Sequence record: MK568540.2
Direction: 5' to 3' (one strand)
Length of the DNA: 64,000 bases
Shown: in pieces, positions 9,033 through 49,012 of the stretch
Numbering within the stretch: position 1 is the stretch's first letter
Layout of the letters: every line of letters begins with the position of its first letter
Position numbers and translations under genes: made by a program
The notes under the pieces: model-generated
The model's input: only the letters and a program-made list of their open reading frames with translations
What the model was told of the DNA's origin: nothing
The model's database searches: none

Positions 9033-9499
9033 TCAATCACCTTTAGAGGCTCGAATCGTACCGAGTCTTCCTTAGTTGCCCATGCTTGGTAAACTCGTTT
9101 CTTTGAGTTCTCTGTTTCGATGCGATTTTTGATGGCTGATTCAGCTAAAGCGCGTGCACCAGATTCGGTTTCATCACACCAACCACTCGGCTCCCAATGA
9201 TCGAAGATAATACCTTCGTTGAGTTCTTGAGTGTACCAGTAGTAGCCGTTACCTAATTCACCACAATCGCGACCGTAATCTTTGTTGTATTCATACACAA
9301 CACGATATTTCAGTAGCGGTTTTTCAGCTAAAGGGTCTGATTGAATCACTTTAGTACCGACTACACCTAGTGCAACTGCGATTAAAATTGATACAAGTGG
9401 CTTTGCTTTTACAAATTCGTTTACTTTTTCTAACATTGTTTTACTCTCTTGTTGTGGTTCATGGGTGTTGACTGGCATCCCGTTTTCATAAATGATCAT
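9029..9499 (-). CDS. hypothetical membrane-anchored protein
   Basis: 156 aa, one TM segment, ATGA overlap. Confidence 0.7.
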   Translation of the reverse strand: MIIYENGMPVNTHEPQQESKTMLEKVNEFVKAKPLVSILIAVALGVVGTKVIQSDPLAEKPLLKYRVVYEYNKDYGRDCGELGNGYYWYTQELNEGIIFDHWEPSGWCDETESGARALAESAIKNRIETENSKKRVYQAWATKEDSVRFEPLKVIE

Positions 9500-40570: not shown

Positions 40571-40632
40571 TAGTCGTTGTCGTTTCGATAAAGCTATAAT
40601 ACAAAAAAGGGCTGCATAGTGCAACCCCTTTT
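40571..40632 (-). promoter_or_regulatory. fused terminator/early promoter cassette
   Basis: TTGCAC(40619-24)-17-TATTAT(40596-601); leader similar to 14968-14990. Confidence 0.8.
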
Positions 40633-40638
40633 ATTAAA

Positions 40639-41709
40639 TTATTTTCGCTTGCAACGAGCGTTCTTTGTCATATGAGCACAGCACTCATCAAGAAACCCCT
40701 TTCTATTAGCAGAAGAATAAGCCGCACTAGAGTTTTTCTGCCAATCACTTCTAGTCTTATATTTCAATGCATCTTCTTTAAGACGTTCAAGTGTCCAATA
40801 TCCATTAGGTTTTCTTTGTAATTCCATATGAGCACAGCACTCATCAATTATACCCTGATTATAAGCATTACTACAACCGCTAGAGTTTTCCCTCCATTCT
40901 CGGCGAGTCTTATATTTCAATGCATCTTCTTTAAGACGTTCAAGTGTCCAATATCCATTAGGTTTTTGATGCATTGTCATATGAGCATAACACTCGTCAA
41001 GTAATCCTTTCTTATGAGCAGCAGCGTAAGCACTGGGTGACATTTTCCGCCACTCAGAACTTGTCTTGTATTTCAACGCATCTTCTTTAAGACGTTCAGG
41101 TGTCCATTTTAATGTTGAACTCCCCAATGCACCAGCTTTAGAACGATTTAAAATAATCCATCCATTGTTTCTGTAGTACTCAATGTGTTCTTTCTCTGCA
41201 ATTTGCGCCAGTTCTTGATTCATATACTCAGTCAATTGCTCGAACTTGACGTTTTCAATGCCATGACGTTCGATTAGATCTATGACCTGAGTTGTTTTCT
41301 TTCGATGAGAACTAAAGCGTTGCTTAGTATCGTAAGTCAACCCAATGTAAATCTCATTACCTGCATAGATTCGATATATACAGCGAGAAAATGCGTTTTT
41401 AGTTGATGGCTTCATATGACCACAACACTCGTCAAGCAACCCTTTCTTATGAGCAGCATCATAAGCACTGCCTGACATTTTCTGCCAATCACTTCTAGTA
41501 TTGTACTTCAATGCATCTTCTTTAAGACGTTCAAGTGTCCAATACCCTCTAGGTTTTTGATGCATTGTCATATGACCACAACACTCATCAATTATACCCC
41601 TACTCTGAGCAGCAGAGTATCCAGATGACATTTTATTCCATTCTTGGCGAGTCTTGTATTTCAACGCATCTTCTTTAAGACGTTCAGATGTCCATTTAAT
41701 TCTAGTCAT
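40639..41709 (-). CDS. GIY-YIG endonuclease with five ~50-aa repeats
   Basis: CIYRIY..NEIYIG.T...R...H GIY-YIG core; repeats WT.ERLKEDALKY.TR..W...DECC.HM (2 N-terminal, 3 C-terminal); start refined to MTRIKW. Confidence 0.85.
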   Translation of the reverse strand: MTRIKWTSERLKEDALKYKTRQEWNKMSSGYSAAQSRGIIDECCGHMTMHQKPRGYWTLERLKEDALKYNTRSDWQKMSGSAYDAAHKKGLLDECCGHMKPSTKNAFSRCIYRIYAGNEIYIGLTYDTKQRFSSHRKKTTQVIDLIERHGIENVKFEQLTEYMNQELAQIAEKEHIEYYRNNGWIILNRSKAGALGSSTLKWTPERLKEDALKYKTSSEWRKMSPSAYAAAHKKGLLDECYAHMTMHQKPNGYWTLERLKEDALKYKTRREWRENSSGCSNAYNQGIIDECCAHMELQRKPNGYWTLERLKEDALKYKTRSDWQKNSSAAYSSANRKGFLDECCAHMTKNARCKRK

Positions 41710-41719
41710 AATATTCTCC

Positions 41720-41770
41720 AATTCAAAAACTGTAGAATATAAAAAAGGGCTGCATAGCGCAACCCTTTTC
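41720..41770 (-). promoter_or_regulatory. fused terminator/promoter duplicated upstream of each GIY-YIG gene
   Basis: TTGCGC(41757-62)-17-TATTCT(41734-39). Confidence 0.75.
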
Positions 41771-41775
41771 TTCAT

Positions 41776-42996
41776 TTATTTTTTGACTCGTATTGGCATA
41801 TGACCACAACATTCATCAAGTATACCTTGTATTCGAGCAGCTTGATACGCACTAGATTTCTTCTGCCATTCTCGGCGAGTCTTGTACTTCAATGCATCTT
41901 CTTTTAGACGTTCGGTTGTCCAATAACCACTCGGCTTTCTTGTAGTAGTCATATGAGAACAACATTCATCAATTATACCACGTTTTCGAGCAGTTTGATA
42001 CGCACCACTAGAGTTCTTGTACCATTCATTTCGAGTTTTGTATTTCAATGCATCTTCTTTTAGACGTTCAAGTGTCCAATAACCACTCGGCTTCTGTCTT
42101 GTAGCGGGCATATGACCACAACATTCATCAATTATACCACGTTTTCGAGCAGCATCATAACCACTAGAGTTCTTCTGCCATTCATTTCGAGTTTTGTATT
42201 TCAATGCATCTTCTTTTAGACGTTCGGTTGTCCAATGCAACATATCACCACCAAGACTACCAGCCTTAGAACGATTCAAAATAACCCAATCGTTATTCGC
42301 GTAGTACTCAATATGTTCCGCCTCTGCAATCTGAGCAAGTTCCGGCTCCATGTAGTCAGTCAATCGCTCGAAAATCACATTCTCAATCCCAACTCGCTCT
42401 ATTAAATCTACAATCTGCGGCGTTCCTTTACGATGGTCGTGGAATCGTCTATCAGTATCATACGTCAACCCGATGTAAATCTCATTACCAGAATATATAC
42501 GATAGATACAACGCTTTGATAAATTCTTGACATTTGTCTTCATATGAGAACAACATTCATCAATTATACCACGTTGTTGAGCGGCACTATAAGCGCCACT
42601 AGAGTTCTTGGCCCATTCTCTGCGAGTCTTGTACTTCAATGCATCTTCTTTAAGACGTTCAAGTGTCCAATAACCATTCGCCTTCCTTGTAGTAGTCATA
42701 TGAGAACAACATTCATCGATCAACCCATGATAATGAGCGGCACTATAAGCGCCACTAGAGTTCTTGTGCCATTCATTTCTGGTCTGGTATTTCAATGCAT
42801 CTTCTTTTAGACGTTCAAGTGTCCAATAACCCCTCGGCTTTACCAGTGCTGTCATATGACGGCAGCACTCATCAAGCAATCCTCTCTTATGAGCAGCATC
42901 ATAACCACTACGTGATTTCTTCTGCCATTCACCACGAGTCTTGTACTTTAAAGCGTCTTCTTTAAGTAACCCAAGCGTCCATTTAATTCTAGCCAT
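41776..42996 (-). CDS. GIY-YIG endonuclease with six ~50-aa repeats
   Basis: same core and repeats (3 N-terminal, 3 C-terminal); start refined to MARIKW. Confidence 0.85.
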   Translation of the reverse strand: MARIKWTLGLLKEDALKYKTRGEWQKKSRSGYDAAHKRGLLDECCRHMTALVKPRGYWTLERLKEDALKYQTRNEWHKNSSGAYSAAHYHGLIDECCSHMTTTRKANGYWTLERLKEDALKYKTRREWAKNSSGAYSAAQQRGIIDECCSHMKTNVKNLSKRCIYRIYSGNEIYIGLTYDTDRRFHDHRKGTPQIVDLIERVGIENVIFERLTDYMEPELAQIAEAEHIEYYANNDWVILNRSKAGSLGGDMLHWTTERLKEDALKYKTRNEWQKNSSGYDAARKRGIIDECCGHMPATRQKPSGYWTLERLKEDALKYKTRNEWYKNSSGAYQTARKRGIIDECCSHMTTTRKPSGYWTTERLKEDALKYKTRREWQKKSSAYQAARIQGILDECCGHMPIRVKK

Positions 42997-43006
42997 AATA
43001 TTCTCT

Positions 43007-43058
43007 AATTCAAAAACTGTAGAATACAAAAAAGGGCTGCATAGCGCAACCCCTTTCT
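43007..43058 (-). promoter_or_regulatory. fused terminator/promoter (copy of 41720..41770)
   Basis: TTGCGC(43044-49)-17-TATTCT(43021-26). Confidence 0.75.
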
Positions 43059-43065
43059 TTAACTT

Positions 43066-43677
43066 TTACGAATGAAGCTCTTCATCGTACTGACTAGCAA
43101 GATAACGACCATCAATACGATAATCACCACAATCAGATACTAAACCATCTACACTAGAATCACCAACTGTAAACACAACTAGTTTACCATACGTCTCAAC
43201 GGCAATTTGTGTCGGACGAGATACAACAACTGTCGCGTCATGTGCATATGCCAATACACTATCGCTTTCGGCATAAATGTCTAGTATCTCACCAACCACT
43301 AGCTCATGCTCTTCATCGACAAAATCAGTTTCTTTATACGTGTAAACAAGACGACCGCTCTTCCACTTACAAGGATACCAATCCCAATCTTTCGCAGATA
43401 GCTTCAGGCGTGCATCTACAGAGACTTTTTGACCATTAATCTTAGTCTCTCGCTGAACATTACCATTCACGCGCTCTTCTTCTACTGAATAAAACGAACC
43501 GTCATCACATACAAGCATATATGTCGGCTGCTCTACACCACGAATACCATCACCCGAATCAATGCAATTCAAATAACCAGACCATGTGTTGTAGTACGTC
43601 TCAACTCGCGATAAACTACCACTCGGCATAACCGCTTGCTTCTCTACTACCTTTTTGTTTCTTTCTACTCGTTTCAT
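43066..43677 (-). CDS. hypothetical protein
   Basis: 203 aa, AGGGG SD. Confidence 0.65.
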   Translation of the reverse strand: MKRVERNKKVVEKQAVMPSGSLSRVETYYNTWSGYLNCIDSGDGIRGVEQPTYMLVCDDGSFYSVEEERVNGNVQRETKINGQKVSVDARLKLSAKDWDWYPCKWKSGRLVYTYKETDFVDEEHELVVGEILDIYAESDSVLAYAHDATVVVSRPTQIAVETYGKLVVFTVGDSSVDGLVSDCGDYRIDGRYLASQYDEELHS

Positions 43678-43748
43678 CTAATACCCCTTGGAAAAATTCT
43701 ACATCACTGCAACGCTTATAATCATCTGCCAGTAACGGCAGACTACGT

Positions 43749-44078
43749 TCATATCTTAACCTTATTAATGTTCTCTATAATGTATTTCAACCAGCTCTTG
43801 CGCTCATATGCACGCAACTTACGACGCTCACAAGGCGGATGATACGCACAGATAAAAGAATAACAATCTTCTAACTCATTAGGCATATCACTCTGGCGTA
43901 CATACATACGCTGCAAATGCTTTAATTTAAGCTTAATCAAGCTAACCATTTCTGAATTCACACCACGCTGCAACTCTAAACAGGTGTACACGCGATGCAA
44001 CTCACCACAATTCAATAACTCTAGAGCACGAGCACGTACATGGCGATTCACTCTGTAATTCTTAAACAACATTACCAA
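43749..44078 (-). CDS. YTC/R..WL family paralog 5
   Basis: RALELL..YTC...SFI...RKSWLKYI. Confidence 0.65.
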   Translation of the reverse strand: MVMLFKNYRVNRHVRARALELLNCGELHRVYTCLELQRGVNSEMVSLIKLKLKHLQRMYVRQSDMPNELEDCYSFICAYHPPCERRKLRAYERKSWLKYIIENINKVKI

Positions 44079-44218
44079 TTACCAGTGAACATCATTACAC
44101 CACAGAACATCGTGGCGATTAATGCAAAGTCTAAAATACATGTACCAAGGTACAAGTCACTTGGTCGCTCACTGTATTTCATGTCGCGACTCATATAAAA
44201 TAACGCCAATGTAATCAC
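44072..44218 (-). CDS. 48-aa membrane microprotein (not in ORF track)
   Basis: GGAGG SD, GTG start, hydrophobic C-terminus. Confidence 0.45.
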   Translation of the reverse strand: MITLALFYMSRDMKYSERPSDLYLGTCILDFALIATMFCGVMMFTGNW

Positions 44219-44388
44219 AATTACCTCCGTAGGCAGTTCAAATCTCTTTGCATTCTCTCACATAATGCCGCTGGCTGTCAAGCAAAAAGATGCGAAGCGG
44301 ATTAGATTTTCACAAATGATGTAAGGTTTTAGACTGCCGCGTACCACACAGGAGCCGATGAGTCTTTCACCATTTTTTCACTAAAAAG

Positions 44389-44497
44389 TTATCCACATTA
44401 TCCACAGACTTATGCACAGCTAAATCATGTTTTTATACACAGATTTCAGACACTTATGCACAATCTCATACACATATTATCCACAGATTTATACACA
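44389..44497 (+). repeat. array of DnaA boxes (candidate origin or DnaA-titration site)
   Basis: TTATCCACA 44389, 44398, 44477; TTATGCACA 44410, 44454; TTATACACA 44433, 44489; TCATACACA 44466; all same strand, in a ~370 bp non-coding gap. Confidence 0.85.
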
Positions 44498-44588
44498 TGT
44501 GCATTTAAACGAGGCATGGTGCGATATATTAAAAACAATACTATCTGTACCATGCTCTGAGACGCTGTGAGAGCGATTCTAAGCGTTT

Positions 44589-44705
44589 TTAGTCATCGTT
44601 TGATATATCGCTCAGGCACCAACCGGCTATAGCTGCTAGAGCACATAGAACAAGCATGAGGTAGCCGATAGGTATATCGTTTAGTAGATTGATTAGTGTT
44701 TGCAT
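44589..44705 (-). CDS. 38-aa membrane microprotein (not in ORF track)
   Basis: MQTLINLLNDIPIGYLMLVLCALAAIAGW..; TAATG coupling. Confidence 0.45.
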   Translation of the reverse strand: MQTLINLLNDIPIGYLMLVLCALAAIAGWCLSDISNDD

Positions 44706-44872
44706 TACGATAGTTTAAAGCTCAATGATAGAATATCAATTAGGTAATACTGAATGATACAGTTAAACGCAGTTGTTATTAGCAGAGCCACGAATGGAAC
44801 TGTTCGTTTTGATTTATCGGTTACAAACAGATATGTAGTGAGAATCAGAATTAAGATTGATAGTGCGAACAT
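44705..44872 (-). CDS. 55-aa membrane microprotein (not in ORF track)
   Basis: MFALSILILILTTYLF...; AGGA SD. Confidence 0.5.
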   Translation of the reverse strand: MFALSILILILTTYLFVTDKSKRTVPFVALLITTAFNCIIQYYLIDILSLSFKLS

Positions 44873-44876
44873 GAGT

Positions 44877-45092
44877 TTATCCTATTGATAGATTAAAGCG
44901 TGCAGCGACATAGCTTGCTCGTTGGTTGTTGTCATTAGTAATACGAATCATAGGTGGTTTATTTGTATGTTCGTTTACGTTATACATGTGAACGACATAT
45001 TCTTTGCCTAGAGTAATGCCGCTTGGTGGTTCTGGTTTATCGATACGAGTTGAAGTATTGTCTATGCATATTGCTTTGATAGTTTGATTCAT
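44877..45092 (-). CDS. hypothetical protein
   Basis: 71 aa; CID...IT.GK.Y, RI.ND motif. Confidence 0.65.
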   Translation of the reverse strand: MNQTIKAICIDNTSTRIDKPEPPSGITLGKEYVVHMYNVNEHTNKPPMIRITNDNNQRASYVAARFNLSIG

Positions 45093-45253
45093 ATTGCGCC
45101 TGCCGTTACGTGTAGTAGAACATACGAGACAAAGCCTAGAACAGCAGTGATTACTAGTTTCACGAATCTAGGTTTGTTAATGAAGCTGAAGATACTCATG
45201 CCAGTGAGTATTGCACAGCATAGAAGTGTCATTAGTAGTATTGTCAAGCTCAT
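45089..45253 (-). CDS. 54-aa membrane microprotein (not in ORF track)
   Basis: MSLTILLMTLLCC...; ATGA overlaps. Confidence 0.5.
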   Translation of the reverse strand: MSLTILLMTLLCCAILTGMSIFSFINKPRFVKLVITAVLGFVSYVLLHVTAGAI

Positions 45254-45423
45254 AGTGTTACTCCGTATTTGTGAATCACAATCATGTTAGCTAGATTGAC
45301 TATACAGCAAATGGCATTGAATATCAAGACAAAGTTTCTGTATTCTTTAGACATGATTTGCTCGTGTGAGTCTATCATTAGCACGACGCTGAATACTGCG
45401 ATGATAATAGATAGTCCAATCAT
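45250..45423 (-). CDS. small membrane protein
   Basis: start refined to MIGLSI after AGGA SD. Confidence 0.6.
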   Translation of the reverse strand: MIGLSIIIAVFSVVLMIDSHEQIMSKEYRNFVLIFNAICCIVNLANMIVIHKYGVTL

Positions 45424-45453
45424 AATGTTTTCCTTTCTTGATTTGATATGTGT

Positions 45454-45491
45454 ATGATACGCGAAAGGGCTGACAACTGTCAACCCTTTTC
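45454..45491 (-). promoter_or_regulatory. fused terminator/promoter
   Basis: TTGACA(45478-83)-18-TATCAT(45454-59) in gggttgaca/tgtcagccc hairpin. Confidence 0.7.
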
Positions 45492-45492
45492 T

Positions 45493-45852
45493 TTAATATA
45501 ATTCATATGATCTGAGATTATTCATATCGAAGATATAGAAGTCTCTATTGCCACTACCGTCATCGGCAGTAGTCAACATGTATTTGTTATCAGTTGATAG
45601 CCACACGCTTGTGCCGTAAACTTCTACTGCATAGCAATCGCCTTCTTCTAATGCATTAGCGTCTTCAAAGCCGTATTGGAACTCACGTATTTGATTAATG
45701 ACGGTATGCATGTCTTTCACGTCGTCAGTTACTAGATCGCAAGTGAATAGCACATCGGTGCAGTCTACTAGTCCGTGCCATAGATGGTCGAGACCAAACT
45801 TCGCTGCGATGGCTTCTTCAGTTTCTTTCATTGTTTTAAGTAGTTCTTTCAT
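45493..45852 (-). CDS. hypothetical acidic protein
   Basis: 119 aa. Confidence 0.7.
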   Translation of the reverse strand: MKELLKTMKETEEAIAAKFGLDHLWHGLVDCTDVLFTCDLVTDDVKDMHTVINQIREFQYGFEDANALEEGDCYAVEVYGTSVWLSTDNKYMLTTADDGSGNRDFYIFDMNNLRSYELY

Positions 45853-45854
45853 GA

Positions 45855-46025
45855 TTAAGCTCTCTTGACGTGAATTTCGCAGCGGCTAACTGTCTTTTGT
45901 ACAGTATGGAATCGTGCTTTGATTGATTGTAGGTAATCGATGACTAATGCTTTATCGCGTGCTGAGTCTACTGTAATTACGTTTTCGTTTACTTTGATGT
46001 GTTGTAAGTATTCTGGTAATTTCAT
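45855..46025 (-). CDS. 56-aa microprotein (not in ORF track)
   Basis: hand-translated MKLPEYLQHIKV... Confidence 0.5.
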   Translation of the reverse strand: MKLPEYLQHIKVNENVITVDSARDKALVIDYLQSIKARFHTVQKTVSRCEIHVKRA

Positions 46026-46027
46026 TG

Positions 46028-46240
46028 TCAAGCCTTATAGTAGTTTTCTACTAGTTGCAGAGTGATTTTGCATTCTATGTATTCAGTGCCGTTTTGAGTT
46101 TCTTCAGCGATAGTGACATAGAATATTTGTTTGTCTTCATCGTACTCGATGTCATCAATGAATTCATATGATTTGAGTTGGCATAACTCAGTGACTATGT
46201 TCATGATGCGACGATGTTCGATGATAATGTCATGTATCAT
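46028..46240 (-). CDS. hypothetical acidic protein
   Basis: start probably MNIVTE. Confidence 0.55.
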   Translation of the reverse strand: MIHDIIIEHRRIMNIVTELCQLKSYEFIDDIEYDEDKQIFYVTIAEETQNGTEYIECKITLQLVENYYKA

Positions 46241-46452
46241 TTGTTATTATGCATCCATTTTTCGAGCGCGACTGTAGTTACAATGACTTCTTGTACTGTT
46301 TCACCATCGAAGTATTGCACTTCCCATAGTTGTTCGTCATCGAAGTAATCTGCATATTCGATATGACCTTTGCCGTTGAACTCATCGTCGAGCATAGCAA
46401 TAAGTGCATCTTGAATTTCAGCGTGTTGTGACATTACATTTGATACGTTCAT
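46237..46452 (-). CDS. hypothetical acidic protein
   Basis: 71 aa. Confidence 0.6.
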   Translation of the reverse strand: MNVSNVMSQHAEIQDALIAMLDDEFNGKGHIEYADYFDDEQLWEVQYFDGETVQEVIVTTVALEKWMHNNK

Positions 46453-46646
46453 AGTTTCTTTTCCAATGGTTGTAGTTCAATTACACGAAAGCCTTGCTTA
46501 TCGAAATCATATTTGTACAGCACACGATTTGCATCTTCGATTTCAGAAAAGATTGCCATGACTTTTATCTCATTGTCAATGTCTAGCACAAGTAGATATC
46601 TGCCTTCTCGGTCTATAATGCCGTAATTTCTCATTTGCGTCTCCAT
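46449..46646 (-). CDS. hypothetical protein
   Basis: ~61 aa. Confidence 0.55.
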   Translation of the reverse strand: METQMRNYGIIDREGRYLLVLDIDNEIKVMAIFSEIEDANRVLYKYDFDKQGFRVIELQPLEKKL

Positions 46647-47257
46647 TCATCACGAACAGTATTGGTTAGTTGTAGATAGAAAGTATCAAGACCTTCGAAG
46701 GATCTAGCATACGTTGGTGAGTCATCAATCATGATATTGATTTGATTCTCACGGCAGTATTCAGCTTTCTTGTTGTTCCAGATTTCGTCATCGACCCATG
46801 GGCGACCTTTCTCGTCGTATTTGATTTCAACGCCATCGTCTTCACATGATTGATGAATGCTAAACCAGTGATCATATTCTAAGTCATCTGGTACATCAGT
46901 ATCGAGTTCTTCTTTAATGCCAGTGATGATATGCACTTCAACTGGTAGTTTGCTTAACAGCGCGAAGAACTCTGGTGATTGATCAATTACGCCATGAATA
47001 TCGATGCCGACTTTGATAACGCCAGTTTCGATAGCGTTCATGCCACGAGTATCAGACAACTCAACAATCTTATCGGTGATTCGCTCATCGAGGTCTTGAA
47101 CTTCAACCATGATGGTAGTGATGTAGGCATCATTGCCGCCATCTAGTGCATAGTCTTGACAGCGCATGAGATACTTTCTAGCGTTGCGCAATTGTTCAAT
47201 CGTCGTGCATGATTCAACGACTTTTTGCATTTTTCTTACTAAATCGTATGGGTTCAT
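46631..47257 (-). CDS. HAD-superfamily phosphatase-like protein with N-terminal extension
   Basis: VGIDIHGVID motif I, IITG, K..YC...I..MIDD. Confidence 0.7.
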   Translation of the reverse strand: MNPYDLVRKMQKVVESCTTIEQLRNARKYLMRCQDYALDGGNDAYITTIMVEVQDLDERITDKIVELSDTRGMNAIETGVIKVGIDIHGVIDQSPEFFALLSKLPVEVHIITGIKEELDTDVPDDLEYDHWFSIHQSCEDDGVEIKYDEKGRPWVDDEIWNNKKAEYCRENQINIMIDDSPTYARSFEGLDTFYLQLTNTVRDEWRRK

Positions 47258-47258
47258 G

Positions 47259-47609
47259 TTAGCCTCTAAGTTTCTCGTTTAGCTTTTTGATTGTATGATC
47301 AACGTCATTGATTTGATGAGTAATGGTTGTCATTTGCTCGACCAATGCTTGTCGAAACATATTCAACGACTCGATGTTTGTTTGGTATTGTTTCTGCCAA
47401 TGTTCGATGAGTTCAGGGATTTCTTCTTCAGATACATCAATTTCATTGTACAGATGTTTGAAATTTAAAATCAATGCGTGGCACAATGGTGCACGGCTCG
47501 GATCTCTAGCCATGACGAACTGTTCTGAATCGAATGGGCTTTGCACAAACACATCGTGTTTTTCAATTGCTAGATCTTCTATTGATGTGTTGATTCGGTA
47601 TGCTTTCAT
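47259..47609 (-). CDS. hypothetical protein
   Basis: 116 aa, C-terminal coiled coil. Confidence 0.65.
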   Translation of the reverse strand: MKAYRINTSIEDLAIEKHDVFVQSPFDSEQFVMARDPSRAPLCHALILNFKHLYNEIDVSEEEIPELIEHWQKQYQTNIESLNMFRQALVEQMTTITHQINDVDHTIKKLNEKLRG

Positions 47610-47881
47610 ACGAAGTTCTCTAGTGAATTGCCGTTTGGTAGTCGTTGATATAGCTTACGACCAGTTTCAGTTTGACCGATTGCTTTCCAATTACTAGACT
47701 CATCAAGCGCACGAGCGATTTCACGACGTAATGTGCTGTTCTTCATTGTGCCGTCATTGCGTTGATTACACGCACGAGCAGCAGGGAACTTTTCAAGCAT
47801 ATCGTCCATTAAATCGTATGCAGTTGCGTAACGACTTGTATTGTTTTTAACTTCATTTCGAATGAGTAGTTTAATATTCAT
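47606..47881 (-). CDS. hypothetical, possibly winged-helix-like protein
   Basis: 91 aa, GAGG SD. Confidence 0.6.
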   Translation of the reverse strand: MNIKLLIRNEVKNNTSRYATAYDLMDDMLEKFPAARACNQRNDGTMKNSTLRREIARALDESSNWKAIGQTETGRKLYQRLPNGNSLENFV

Positions 47882-47917
47882 GTTAATTTCCTCAAAGGGG
47901 CATTACTGCCCCGTTAG

Positions 47918-48943
47918 TTAGATGCCAGTGAAGTACTGAATGATTTGATAATGATCGTCATACAAACGTTCTTGCATTTCCATTACTTCGCTCAACGAAT
48001 ACCATTTTGCAGACACAGCATCATCGGCTGGTTTCACTTTCGGGAAAGTGTTGTCAGGGTTTGGCTGCACTTTGAAGTGATATGCCATTGTGATACGAGT
48101 GTGTGGGTAAGAGCGATTGGGGTTATCGAACATCTTCTCACCTTTGAGAGAGCCACGCAAGACTTTCTCTGGGATTTTGATGTTAGTTTCTTCTTGCAGT
48201 TCACGAATCGCAGCAGTCAAGAATGTTTCTTTCTCATGCTTATGACCGCCAGGTAATGCTAAACAGCCTTTGCCTGGGTTGAACTTACGCTCAACAAGAA
48301 GAACATGACCTGCACACATCACAACGCTGTCAGCACACGCGATATTCAAGTGACCTTGGTAGGGATAGTCTTTAAACTTCTCGATTTCGCGCACTGAGCT
48401 ATCGTATTCAGCTTTCATTTCAGTGAAATGCTCTGTTTTGCTCCAATCGTCAAGAAACATCATTGTTTGCTTGGGAATCAGACCAGACATAACAGGGTGG
48501 TTCAGTAGAATCTCGCTGAAGTACAGTTCTCTGAAGTCAGTTGCAGAGATAACTCTGTTATACATCTTCACTGGTTCAGGTTGAAATAGTTTTAGCTCAG
48601 GGAATAGCTTGAGATAGTAGCTGCTTTCGTCTTTGTCGTAACCAACGATGTGAGTGGCACCTTTTGTATGAGAACGAACATTTGACTGCCAAACGTCGTC
48701 TTTCGCGTAATCACCTAGTGGTACAAAGCGAACTTTGCTTCGAATATCGTCAGGTAGAGCAATACCCATCATATCACGTACTTCTTCGAACGTGAAGGGG
48801 TTTTTAACTGAGCGATGTCGATTAGAGCTACCGATTAAGATAGTCATCTTGTCTAGATTAAGCGATTCGAACGCTTGGGTGATTGCAGATAGATGACCGT
48901 TGTGGAATGGACGAAAGCGTCCGATAAAGATTGCGTGTGACAT
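47918..48943 (-). CDS. natV: bifunctional NMN adenylyltransferase / Nudix hydrolase (NadM-Nudix)
   Basis: GRF.PFHNGH, NPF...E, SATDFR; Nudix box LPGG....ET...AA.REL.EET; DDA..A.W, DH. Confidence 0.93.
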   Translation of the reverse strand: MSHAIFIGRFRPFHNGHLSAITQAFESLNLDKMTILIGSSNRHRSVKNPFTFEEVRDMMGIALPDDIRSKVRFVPLGDYAKDDVWQSNVRSHTKGATHIVGYDKDESSYYLKLFPELKLFQPEPVKMYNRVISATDFRELYFSEILLNHPVMSGLIPKQTMMFLDDWSKTEHFTEMKAEYDSSVREIEKFKDYPYQGHLNIACADSVVMCAGHVLLVERKFNPGKGCLALPGGHKHEKETFLTAAIRELQEETNIKIPEKVLRGSLKGEKMFDNPNRSYPHTRITMAYHFKVQPNPDNTFPKVKPADDAVSAKWYSLSEVMEMQERLYDDHYQIIQYFTGI

Positions 48944-49012
48944 ATTGGGCTCCCCATTTTGTCATTGATTGAGATTAGATTATTACATCTATTGTTGTTT
49001 GTGTCAAATACT

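Follow-up and report, generated by a model that had tools for sequence, protein, structure and literature searches.

The window, a 64,000-nucleotide stretch of record MK568540.2, derives from a KVP40-like, T4-like Vibrio phage of the family Straboviridae, to which T4 also belongs. We computed whole-genome statistics on Va3 (247 kb), a 98.5% identical relative that served as a stand-in for the window's phage, and compared the locus among Va3, XZ1, phi-Grn1, KVP40, VH1_2019, QD01 and nt-1. An intergenic gap at 44.5 kb, which lies at about 228 kb in Va3, separates two groups of genes, both of which lie on the minus strand, as gene calls and annotation confirm. The features of the locus are as follows.

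40604..40632, minus: terminator-like hairpin at the left edge, from a terminator scan (13-bp stem then a T run; fold −17 kcal/mol, z = −4.0)
40639..41775, minus: GIY-YIG homing-endonuclease-like gene, copy 1 (378 aa; Pfam and PHROG match)
41776..43029, minus: GIY-YIG homing-endonuclease-like gene, copy 2 (417 aa)
43030..43060, minus: second terminator-like hairpin, from sequence reading and fold (−18 kcal/mol, z = −3.8)
43066..43677, minus: 203-aa gene, phrog_13976, with strong G/T-ending codon bias
43749..44078, minus: 109-aa gene with extreme GC3 skew
44072..44194, minus: 40-aa small hydrophobic ORF, first gene of the left unit (Va3_346 in the Va3 annotation)
44252..44281, minus: leftward sigma-70-like promoter (promoter scan, 10/12)
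44389..44497, plus: DnaA-box array, seven exact TTATNCACA and one near-match (motif scan)
44510..44602, plus: long hairpin, then a short hairpin with a T5 run (RNA/DNA fold, conserved)
44589..44705, minus: 38-aa small hydrophobic ORF, last gene of the right unit (annotated in XZ1)
44705..47257, minus: ten tightly packed small genes (54–208 aa) with A/C-ending codon bias
47259..48943, minus: two small genes and natV (NMN adenylyltransferase/Nudix), promoter-proximal in the right unit
48979..49007, minus: strong sigma-70-like promoter (promoter scan, 11/12)

On the left, endonuclease copy 1 matches Pfam GIY-YIG PF01541 (23.3 bits, cut-off 22.6) and the homing endonuclease family phrog_314 (6e-7), and contains internal repeated modules of ~45 aa. 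Copy 2 is ~62–65% identical to it, Rhizobium phages have homologues with GIY-YIG nuclease annotations, and relatives carry between 0 and 2 such genes. The 203-aa gene is present in all relatives and had no match in family and solved-structure searches; the hairpin directly downstream of it is a copy of the one at 40604..40632. The leftward promoter reads TTGACA-18-GAGAAT with an upstream TG, and its core is invariant in the alignments of relatives. On the right, the start of the 38-aa ORF overlaps the stop of the ORF upstream, and the promoter reads TTGACA-17-AATAAT, again with an upstream TG.

The DnaA-box island described in the first-pass annotation is real: all seven matches lie on the plus strand, with start-to-start spacings of 9, 12, 23, 21, 23 and 12 nt. 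The window holds 12 TTATNCACA matches where 4.1 are expected, and the array is the sole DnaA-box cluster in Va3. There are seven boxes in the window, Va3, XZ1 and phi-Grn1 (which has one additional gene inserted in the gap), five in QD01 and four exact boxes in nt-1; in QD01 and nt-1 the boxes stay in place, across two genera, while spacers vary. In KVP40 and VH1_2019 the boxes at the homologous gap have degenerated, and we found no replacement repeat there. As a dense, same-orientation consensus array flanked by two co-directional operons, upstream of a promoter, the cluster resembles non-origin DnaA clusters (datA-type titration sites, DnaA-regulated promoters, roadblocks); it differs from them in belonging to a lytic T4-like phage. 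We found no plasmid sequences similar to it. The adjacent hairpin element folds better on the plus strand (−30.6 kcal/mol, z = −3.3) than on the minus strand (−23.3, z = −2.1), as does its consensus structure (−16.9 versus −8.6 kcal/mol), and four stem positions are G-U on the plus strand that would be A-C on the minus strand. The alignment contained no double compensatory changes, and an Rfam search gave no match. An AT-rich stretch of ~28 nt (44520-44548) forms the loop of the conserved hairpin.

Size and extent of the skew flip

A GC-skew inversion at the gap had been proposed from four lines counted by hand (43141-43200, C18/G4; 43921-43980, C15/G5; 44761-44820, G15/C9; 44821-44880, G13/C5), and these counts are exact. 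In 300-nt windows, plus-strand skew goes from −0.365 (43400-43699) to +0.257 (44750-45049). With 1.5-kb arms, the right-minus-left step peaks at 44,501 with a value of +0.40; the runner-up in the window is 0.13 and the standard deviation of all steps 0.069. G/C counts are 211/390 on the left and 318/259 on the right (Fisher p = 6e-12), and the A/T balance likewise differs between the sides (p = 3e-4). In Va3, the gap step exceeds every other step in the genome at scales of 1, 1.5 and 3 kb (0.45, 0.40 and 0.32), compared with 0.25, 0.24 and 0.22 at the main gene-strand switch.

The flip is nevertheless local. Cumulative G−C in the window has a local minimum at 44,496, which, like the step itself, falls at the right end of the DnaA array. 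It reaches its next local maximum at 49,003 and then falls again, so that 44.5 kb is not the global minimum. The whole-genome curve of Va3 tracks gene strand, with its global extremes at the ends of the record and none at the gap; the gap therefore yields only a local notch. After amino-acid correction, the third-position curve of Va3 shows the same notch (316 to 161 to 311), which regains baseline within ~10 kb, with the global minimum near 89 kb and the maximum near 216 kb. The cumulative-skew minimum predicted at ~44.5 kb thus exists as a local feature but not as a global one.

Silent sites and codon choice

The flip is seen at third codon positions and persists after amino-acid correction. 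The inflection whose absence had been named as a possible refutation is therefore present, and amino-acid composition of the flanking genes does not explain it. Left genes favour G/T-ending codons and right genes A/C-ending codons; with the genes of both units on the minus strand, this makes the left side of the plus strand rich in C and A and its right side rich in G and T. In two-fold pyrimidine codons, C/(C+T) is 0.24 on the left and 0.52–0.55 on the right (genome 0.49), and in purine codons G/(G+A) is 0.48 on the left and 0.18–0.23 on the right (genome 0.33). At four-fold sites the right block has A.42, C.22, G.09 and T.27, where the genome has A.31, C.11, G.17 and T.42.

Single genes show the same pattern. 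The GC3 skew of the 109-aa gene (+0.49 to +0.50, z = +4.75) is the genome's highest among genes of at least 100 aa, the 203-aa gene has +0.43 (z = +4.4), and the endonuclease copies have silent-site scores of z = +4.6 (copy 1, keto excess) and +5.2 (copy 2). The ten small genes on the right, which form the core of the positive-skew segment, have GC3 skews of 0.00 to −0.70, with eight at or below −0.31; z is −2.4 to −4.7 in eight and −0.8 in the remaining two. Bias in the genes at 47259..48943 is weaker and of the same sign. When 377 genes are ranked after amino-acid correction, four left genes fall within the six most G/T-rich and eight right genes within the 20 most A/C-rich. The gap boundary is the genome's top change point (25.3, next best 10.1), with p <= 0.0005 by permutation of gene order. 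Amino-acid composition shows no shift in the direction that pervasive mutation pressure would give.

We considered translationally selected codon usage as a source of the right-hand bias. The phage encodes 28 tRNAs, and the right block favours many of their cognate codons (CCA.80, CTA.48, CAA 1.00, AGA.36, TGC.73, TTC.72), overlapping in part with highly expressed late genes, at CTA, CCA, CAA and TTC. It departs from the highly expressed set at Gly (GGC.69 versus GGT.74) and Val, preferring GGC and GTC, and at NAY, where NAC codons show no rise. Its per-codon bias (−0.15 to −0.31) is also 3–5 times stronger than that of the major capsid protein gene (−0.06). Because the right block exceeds the capsid gene and departs from the highly expressed set, translational selection alone is a poor fit.

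Edges of the bias and its conservation

The silent-site bias is bounded by unit and cassette edges. The positive-skew segment ends on the right at the promoter at 49007-48979, which contains the cumulative maximum at 49,003. The strong left bias stops at the terminator at 40632-40604, across which silent-site bias changes from +0.12 to −0.10. The skewed segments stop at promoters, terminators or the borders of gene cassettes, with no decay with distance on the left.

The flip also occurs at the homologous gap in KVP40, VH1_2019, QD01 and nt-1. The DnaA boxes are not required for it, since steps without them are as large (0.33 in KVP40 and 0.38 in VH1_2019). The left bias extends over ~1.0 kb in QD01, 1.7 kb in nt-1 and 1.9 kb in KVP40, which has no endonuclease gene, over 2.5 kb in VH1_2019, which has one, and over 3.85 kb in Va3 and the window, which have two. 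Its length thus tracks gene content (inserted homing-endonuclease genes) and not distance: genes 1.9–3.9 kb from the gap are unbiased in KVP40 and strongly biased in Va3. The bias is stationary and conserved across lineages. Orthologues of the 203-aa gene in KVP40, VH1_2019, QD01 and nt-1 share its direction, the A/C-ending bias of the right genes is repeated in four other lineages, and nt-1 orthologues carry the bias at only 69–81% identity. Counts of third-position substitutions are balanced, at 26 against 24 left of the gap and 32 against 23 to its right, a comparison of low power.

Explanations for the flip

We favour, at a rough probability of 45%, the reading that two early transcription units of the same orientation, with opposite bias at silent codon positions, meet at the flip. 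The cause would probably lie in the transcription unit or the codon, through selection or mutation, and not in the polarity of replication forks. Some observations count against this reading. The right bias fades gradually over 3–4 kb and not stepwise, and most silent-site shifts mirror each other across the gap as exposed-strand C-to-T and A-to-G changes would. Sense transcription fits the left polarity but not the reversed polarity on the right, and it would be a coincidence that the genome's two extremes adjoin at its only DnaA-box cluster.

A local replication-initiation zone, with forks repeatedly diverging from the gap, is less likely but stays a live rival. Host DnaA on the boxes, in phages that have them, an R-loop formed from the leftward promoter, or the two together would start the forks. 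C-to-T and A-to-G changes would gather on the template of the lagging strand, which would be the minus strand left of the gap and the plus strand right of it. With T4-like, recombination-started forks everywhere, polarity would fade within a few kilobases and hence leave a local footprint. The polarity of both GC and AT skew is right on both sides at silent sites, although the mirroring is inexact (on the right, NAY codons do not change) and amino-acid composition is unshifted. The step is the unique strongest in 247 kb and its minimum at 44,496 ends the only box cluster, but a genome-scale inflection is absent. Box positions are kept in two genera despite variable spacers, and conserved structured elements favouring the plus strand adjoin the boxes, yet the step is no weaker in KVP40 and VH1_2019, which have neither boxes nor replacement repeats. 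The gradual decay on the right would fit, as would a stationary bias shared with nt-1 orthologues 69–81% identical and showing balanced third-position substitutions; the right segment, however, stops at a promoter, and the left bias halts abruptly at cassette and terminator edges, with KVP40 and Va3 genes differing at equal distance. The endonuclease homologues of the clade all lie at this one locus and could thus have equilibrated to local pressure. Finally, the three annotated T4 origins that we checked show little or no step: oriF and oriG have none (z = 0.1–1.3), oriA has a small one (0.07–0.10), and T4's largest steps fall at gene-strand switches.

Less probable still is divergent transcription, or R-loops, from the gap, with the exposed non-template strand turning G/T-rich in each direction. 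On the left, sense transcription from the leftward promoter would end stepwise at intrinsic terminators; on the right, a non-coding RNA from or beside the box array would run antisense into the right unit and terminate progressively. A G-rich non-template strand would in turn favour R-loops, of the kind that prime T4 origins. In other systems, GC skew downstream of promoters promotes R-loops (PMC3787257). The local extent, the left step, the right gradient and the independence from DnaA boxes would all be covered. Record annotations give the primer of T4 oriG as an RNA antisense to gene 34, and those of oriF and oriA as sense transcripts. We found, however, no conserved rightward sigma-70 promoter, the sole plus-strand match (44237-44266, 9/12) being unconserved, and a scan found no T4-type late promoter on the plus strand. 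The conserved hairpin and the hairpin with a T5 run do fold better on that strand, but the structure lacks covariation support, and the terminator-like element at ~44,600 would halt rightward RNA after ~100 nt. Transcription-linked skews are, moreover, usually much weaker than the gap flip.

A relic of horizontal transfer or chance, with blocks from donors of unlike composition happening to abut, is already disfavoured and highly improbable: the endonuclease genes are mobile (0 to 2 copies), the locus is highly mosaic among relatives and phi-Grn1 has its extra gene in the gap, but the patchy distribution is confined to the endonuclease genes, the core left genes and the entire right block occur with the same bias in all five lineages compared, which include a second genus, substitutions show no drift toward the genome average (at low power), and the permutation gives p <= 0.0005.

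Known systems match the gap in part. Like a bacterial oriC-type origin, it combines a DnaA-box cluster with a GC and AT skew sign change that fits diverging forks, shows at third positions and does not follow gene orientation. Skew at oriC-type origins spans half a replicon, whereas the flip covers only 1–4 kb on each side; in place of a genome-scale polarity switch with a global cumulative minimum there is a local notch, with edges at promoters and terminators, and it persists without DnaA boxes. The R-loop-primed T4 origins oriA, oriF (uvsY) and oriG (34) also have a promoter at the site, and oriA has segF nearby as the gap has homing-endonuclease genes. The gap is syntenic with no T4 origin: gene order around rIIA/rIIB/dda is different, and none of the genes next to T4 origins recur at the gap. 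T4 origins have no common motif and no DnaA boxes, with iterons in oriE only (PMC3016281), whereas the gap has an array of seven. The polarity on which the first-pass annotation based a bidirectional origin is as it described, C-rich to the left and G-rich to the right, but it is not specific support for an origin at the boxes, because there is no global minimum, the edges are those of cassettes, promoters and terminators, the flip occurs without boxes, and T4 origins show little or no step. The skew thus does not secure an origin and does not favour one specifically, though one may lie at the gap.

The intrastrand bias linked to transcription in T4-type genomes (Kano-Sueoka et al.) is matched in that genome-wide skew in Va3 also follows gene orientation and that the skew of the left unit is of the usual sign but stronger, with a terminator-bounded extent. 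The flip differs from this bias in occurring without a change of gene orientation, and the right unit, which is promoter-bounded, reverses the usual coding-strand bias. On the two-unit reading that we favour, the left unit would start at the promoter at 44281-44252, end at the terminators at 43060-43030 and 40632-40604, and comprise the 40-aa ORF, the 109-aa and 203-aa genes and the two homing-endonuclease genes. Its T-ending pyrimidine and G-ending purine codons represent an exaggeration of the usual coding-strand G+T excess, a direction that deamination of the non-template strand in transcription would be expected to give or that, alternatively, could come from avoidance of tRNA-cognate codons in genes that are mobile or poorly expressed. 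The right unit would begin at the promoter at 49007-48979 and reach as far as the gap; it is loaded with A- and C-ending codons, which pair Watson–Crick with G/U-wobble tRNAs, including most of the 28 that the phage encodes.

Size, position and limits of the skew step

The only similarity matches of the window were to Vibrio phages. Across 42–47 kb it is 98.5% identical to phage Va3 (MK568540.2; Straboviridae, Schizotequatrovirus, the KVP40 group of T4-like phages), and we ran genome-scale tests on the complete Va3 sequence of 247,567 bp, in which window position 42,000 aligns with 225,417. The four sample lines counted by hand in the first-pass annotation, which had reported an inversion of GC skew at 44.4–44.6 kb, were exact on recount. 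Plus-strand GC skew rises from a minimum of −0.365 at 43.4–43.7 kb to +0.257 at 44.75–45.05 kb. Measured with arms of 1.5 kb, the step (right minus left) reaches +0.40 at 44,501 (runner-up in the window, 0.13; sd 0.069), the two arms differing in both G/C counts (p = 6e-12) and A/T counts (p = 3e-4). The largest step in the whole Va3 genome falls at the same point (0.45, 0.40 and 0.32 at scales of 1, 1.5 and 3 kb), with smaller steps at gene-orientation switches (0.25, 0.24 and 0.22). We conclude that the inversion is real in the window and in Va3, and stronger than a reader of the sequence alone could have known. Chance was rejected as its cause by dinucleotide-independent step statistics and gene-order permutation. 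To the left and right of 44.5 kb alike, the genes do lie on the minus strand, both in the window and in all of the annotated relatives; a wrongly called strand in the right block was ruled out, as its minus-strand ORFs are tightly packed with a normally G-rich first codon position.

The local cumulative G−C minimum lies at 44,496, the penultimate base of an array of DnaA boxes. The minimum predicted from the sequence is thus present locally, but Va3 has no genome-wide minimum there, its curve following gene orientation. After correction for amino acids, the third-position curve forms a sharp V at this point (316 to 161 to 311 over Va3 224.2–234.9 kb) that is not the global minimum. Over the genome as a whole, the same curve trends broadly between a minimum at ~89 kb and a maximum at ~216 kb, which could reflect gene-class differences or a weak genome-wide polarity. 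The skewed region comprises a left and a right unit of minus-strand genes separated by an intergenic gap, each unit with a candidate promoter at its start.

Promoter candidates bounding the two units
44281–44252, minus strand: conserved leftward promoter-like site that opens the left unit
49007–48979, minus strand: strong sigma-70-like promoter candidate, TTGACA-17-AATAAT with TG, 11/12 matches

The segment of positive skew ends at 49,003, within the latter site, and the left bias stops abruptly (+0.12 to −0.10) at a terminator hairpin at 40632–40604. The effect is thus a local one, with its limits at the edges of gene units. Two more sigma-70-like matches lie within the right unit (45454–45483 and 45299–45327, minus strand; 11/12 and 10/12), just upstream of its most biased genes, and one overlaps a hairpin at ~45460–45490.

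Silent-site composition and its recurrence in relatives

Coding-strand GC3 skew is +0.38 to +0.50 in the four genes at 40639–44078 (minus strand) and 0.00 to −0.70 in the ten at 44705–47257 (minus strand), being −0.31 or lower in 8 of the 10; the window mean is −0.04 (sd 0.21). The four left genes hold ranks 1–4 among the 258 Va3 genes of at least 100 aa.

Silent-site composition (left unit; right unit; genome)
C/(C+T), two-fold pyrimidine codons: 0.24; 0.52–0.55; 0.49
G/(G+A), two-fold purine codons: 0.48; 0.18–0.23; 0.33
Four-fold sites, A/C/G/T:.26/.08/.13/.53;.42/.22/.09/.27;.31/.11/.17/.42

We scored 377 Va3 genes for G+T at synonymous third positions relative to the expectation from their own amino acids. 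The four left genes reached z = +4.4 to +5.2, all within the top six; internal repeats inflate the scores of the two endonuclease genes, and the two non-repetitive genes by themselves still fall in the top six. Eight right genes scored −2.4 to −4.7, within the bottom twenty. The gap boundary is the top change point of the genome (25.3, next 10.1; gene-order permutation p ≤ 0.0005). No matching shift in amino-acid composition was found on comparing the two sides. Since the bias sits at silent sites and survives correction, amino-acid composition is ruled out as its cause; with the third-position inflection present at 44.4–44.6 kb, neither outcome that the first-pass annotation had named as fatal to its claim was observed.

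All lineages examined show the step again at the homologous gap, with identical signs of silent-site bias.

Skew step at the homologous gap
XZ1: 0.37
KVP40: 0.33
VH1_2019: 0.38
QD01: 0.28
nt-1 (other genus, Mylasvirus): 0.39

The orthologues of nt-1 are merely 69–81% identical to the window, and in the Va3 clade, substitutions at third positions are evenly balanced (left 26 versus 24, right 32 versus 23; low power). Polarised spectra, drawn from a strongly mosaic locus with 61–87 third-position changes per main block and 11–24 in two smaller blocks, indicate stationarity and lack the power to tell mutation from selection. Identical signs in diverged lineages, together with balanced substitutions, indicate that the bias is maintained and not a fading relic. 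Its length on the left is ~1.0 kb in QD01, 1.7 in nt-1, 1.9 in KVP40, 2.5 in VH1_2019 and 3.85 in Va3, varying with the cassettes inserted there, not with how far a gene lies from the gap.

The 378-aa and 417-aa left genes (40639–43029, minus strand) are paralogous GIY-YIG homing-endonuclease-like genes, each with 5–7 copies of a Cys-containing ~45-aa repeat flanking the catalytic domain; these repeats presumably also account for weak, artefactual Pfam matches to insulin, metallothionein and SusF/SusE.

GIY-YIG gene copies
Two: window, Va3
One: XZ1, VH7D, phi-Grn1, phi-ST2, VH1_2019
None: ValKK3, KVP40, QD01, nt-1

All clade homologues of the endonuclease genes occupy this one locus, so position and gene identity are inseparable through paralogues elsewhere. 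Apart from GIY-YIG, the flanking proteins gave no Pfam, NCBIfam or PDB match. Near-identical terminator hairpins follow the 203-aa gene (43030–43060, minus strand) and the distal endonuclease gene (40604–40632, minus strand), and it looks as if the cassette carries, or duplicated, a terminator at its insertion point. Two tiny hydrophobic ORFs directly flank the gap on the minus strand, one of 38 aa (44589–44705, unannotated in Va3) and one of 40 aa (44072–44194).

Elements of the gap

Seven exact TTATNCACA boxes lie at 44389–44497, all on the plus strand; the window holds 12 matches versus 4.1 expected, and the array is the sole DnaA-box cluster in complete Va3. The corresponding region spans 9212–9298, 9056–9131 and 9320–9430 in the stretches L010, L011 and L007, respectively. 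Box positions are kept in the window, QD01 and nt-1 (Schizotequatrovirus and Mylasvirus) while spacers vary, which suggests selection on the predicted DnaA boxes. In KVP40 and VH1_2019 a segment of equal length has diverged, with no consensus box left and no replacement iterons or repeats found in the gap, and the flip is undiminished despite the degenerate boxes. Borrowing of the island from a plasmid origin was rejected, as it had no plasmid match.

To the right of the boxes (44510–44602), there is a long, conserved hairpin and, after it, a short one with a T5 run. Both fold better on the plus strand, where alone several G–U pairs are possible. The element had no Rfam match, no covariation and no clear promoter; it could act as a small RNA transcribed rightward or as a hairpin in single-stranded DNA. 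An antisense RNA from a T4-type late promoter was rejected, there being no TATAAATA on the plus strand anywhere near. In phi-Grn1 (L012 5640–6185), an extra 181-aa gene with no assigned function is inserted in the gap just right of the boxes; at silent sites it is weakly biased, with the sign of the right side (z = −1.9).

Two laboratories have deposited five GenBank records whose ends fall within 30 bp of one another in the gap, at 44293 for R10Z and R11Z and at 44322/3 for PVA23, PVA8 and PC-Liy1. According to the PVA23 paper, assembly was by default SOAPdenovo without re-orientation, and a related phage is reported to be headful-packaged and circularly permuted. The clustered breakpoints may mark a coverage dip or a physical discontinuity.

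Readings of the inversion

The most probable reading, at roughly 0.45, is that the flip marks where two early operons meet, their silent-site compositions being opposite and actively maintained. Nearly all of the 28 phage tRNAs carry G or U as the wobble base, which gives them Watson–Crick codons ending in C or A, and the right block strongly favours many phage-tRNA codons (CCA, CTA, CAA, AGA, TGC and TTC). It also favours GGC and GTC, shows no preference for NAC and is biased several-fold above the capsid gene; translational selection can therefore explain this block only in part, at best. The left-unit polarity is that predicted if the non-template strand were deaminated, and the right-unit polarity is the reverse of that prediction. 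Outside the window, Va3 carries a cluster (L002 4810–9568) annotated as 7-cyano-7-deazaguanine synthase, QueF-like reductase, GTP cyclohydrolase I and 6-pyruvoyl-tetrahydropterin synthase-like protein, a hint of 7-deazaguanine chemistry, modifying guanine in tRNA or DNA, that could bear on G-related mutation patterns.

Most silent-site shifts mirror across the gap, as they would if an exposed strand underwent C-to-T and A-to-G changes, and this alone among the features is a genuine fit to diverging forks, or to divergent transcription. A local replication-initiation zone in the gap would account for the mirroring and is a less probable rival; the cassette-tracking left extent and the persistence of the flip without boxes in KVP40 and VH1_2019 are evidence against fork polarity as the cause. 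The polarity on which the origin had been proposed is real and holds at silent sites, but skew by itself does not favour the origin reading of the boxes. We know of no mapped replication origin in the KVP40/nt-1 group. At the T4 record origins (oriF, 115,321; oriG, 152,947; oriA, 16,763) there is little or no skew step (z = 0.1–1.3 at oriF and oriG; 0.07–0.10 at oriA), and the largest T4 steps lie at gene-strand switches. A review places T4 oriE, oriF and oriG near transcriptional divergence coinciding with shifts in compositional bias, describes oriA and oriC as without such divergence or shift, and finds no motif common to T4 origins (PMC3016281). In phi-Grn1 and phi-St2, cumulative skew likewise follows gene orientation, and the one estimate found for the group from cumulative skew puts a putative origin elsewhere, where the global skew curve has its extremes (PMC5107563). 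We regard as unlikely the fuller proposal that KVP40-like T4-type vibriophages have a fixed, repeatedly firing initiation zone in the gap, ancestrally coupled to host DnaA through the phased box array, whose diverging forks or their R-loops would have written the strongest mutational strand footprint of the genome on a few kilobases each side.

Divergent transcription or R-loops from the gap would also fit the mirrored shifts, as well as the better plus-strand folding of the conserved hairpins; no conserved rightward promoter was found at the gap, however, and the hairpins showed no covariation. This account is less probable than the initiation zone. End resection from a preferred double-strand end was rejected by reasoning, since 5′-to-3′ resection leaves 3′ tails exposing the plus strand on the left and the minus strand on the right, the opposite of the observed skew. 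A transfer relic or chance is very unlikely.

The locus is a sharply defined, testable candidate of ~400 bp, where a conserved DnaA-box array and structured elements that are likewise conserved occur together with the strongest strand asymmetry at silent sites anywhere in the 247-kb genome; KVP40 and VH1_2019, which have lost the boxes, are natural controls. This phage family is thought to replicate by R-loop- and recombination-started initiation. An initiation zone, if true, would be a host-initiator-linked origin in such a family, and the local skew footprint would expose an origin invisible to genome-wide skew. Should the operon or codon level prove to be the source instead, the locus would be a clean warning that a skew inversion may pass a third-codon-position test without being a replication signal, particularly in phages with transcription-governed skew.
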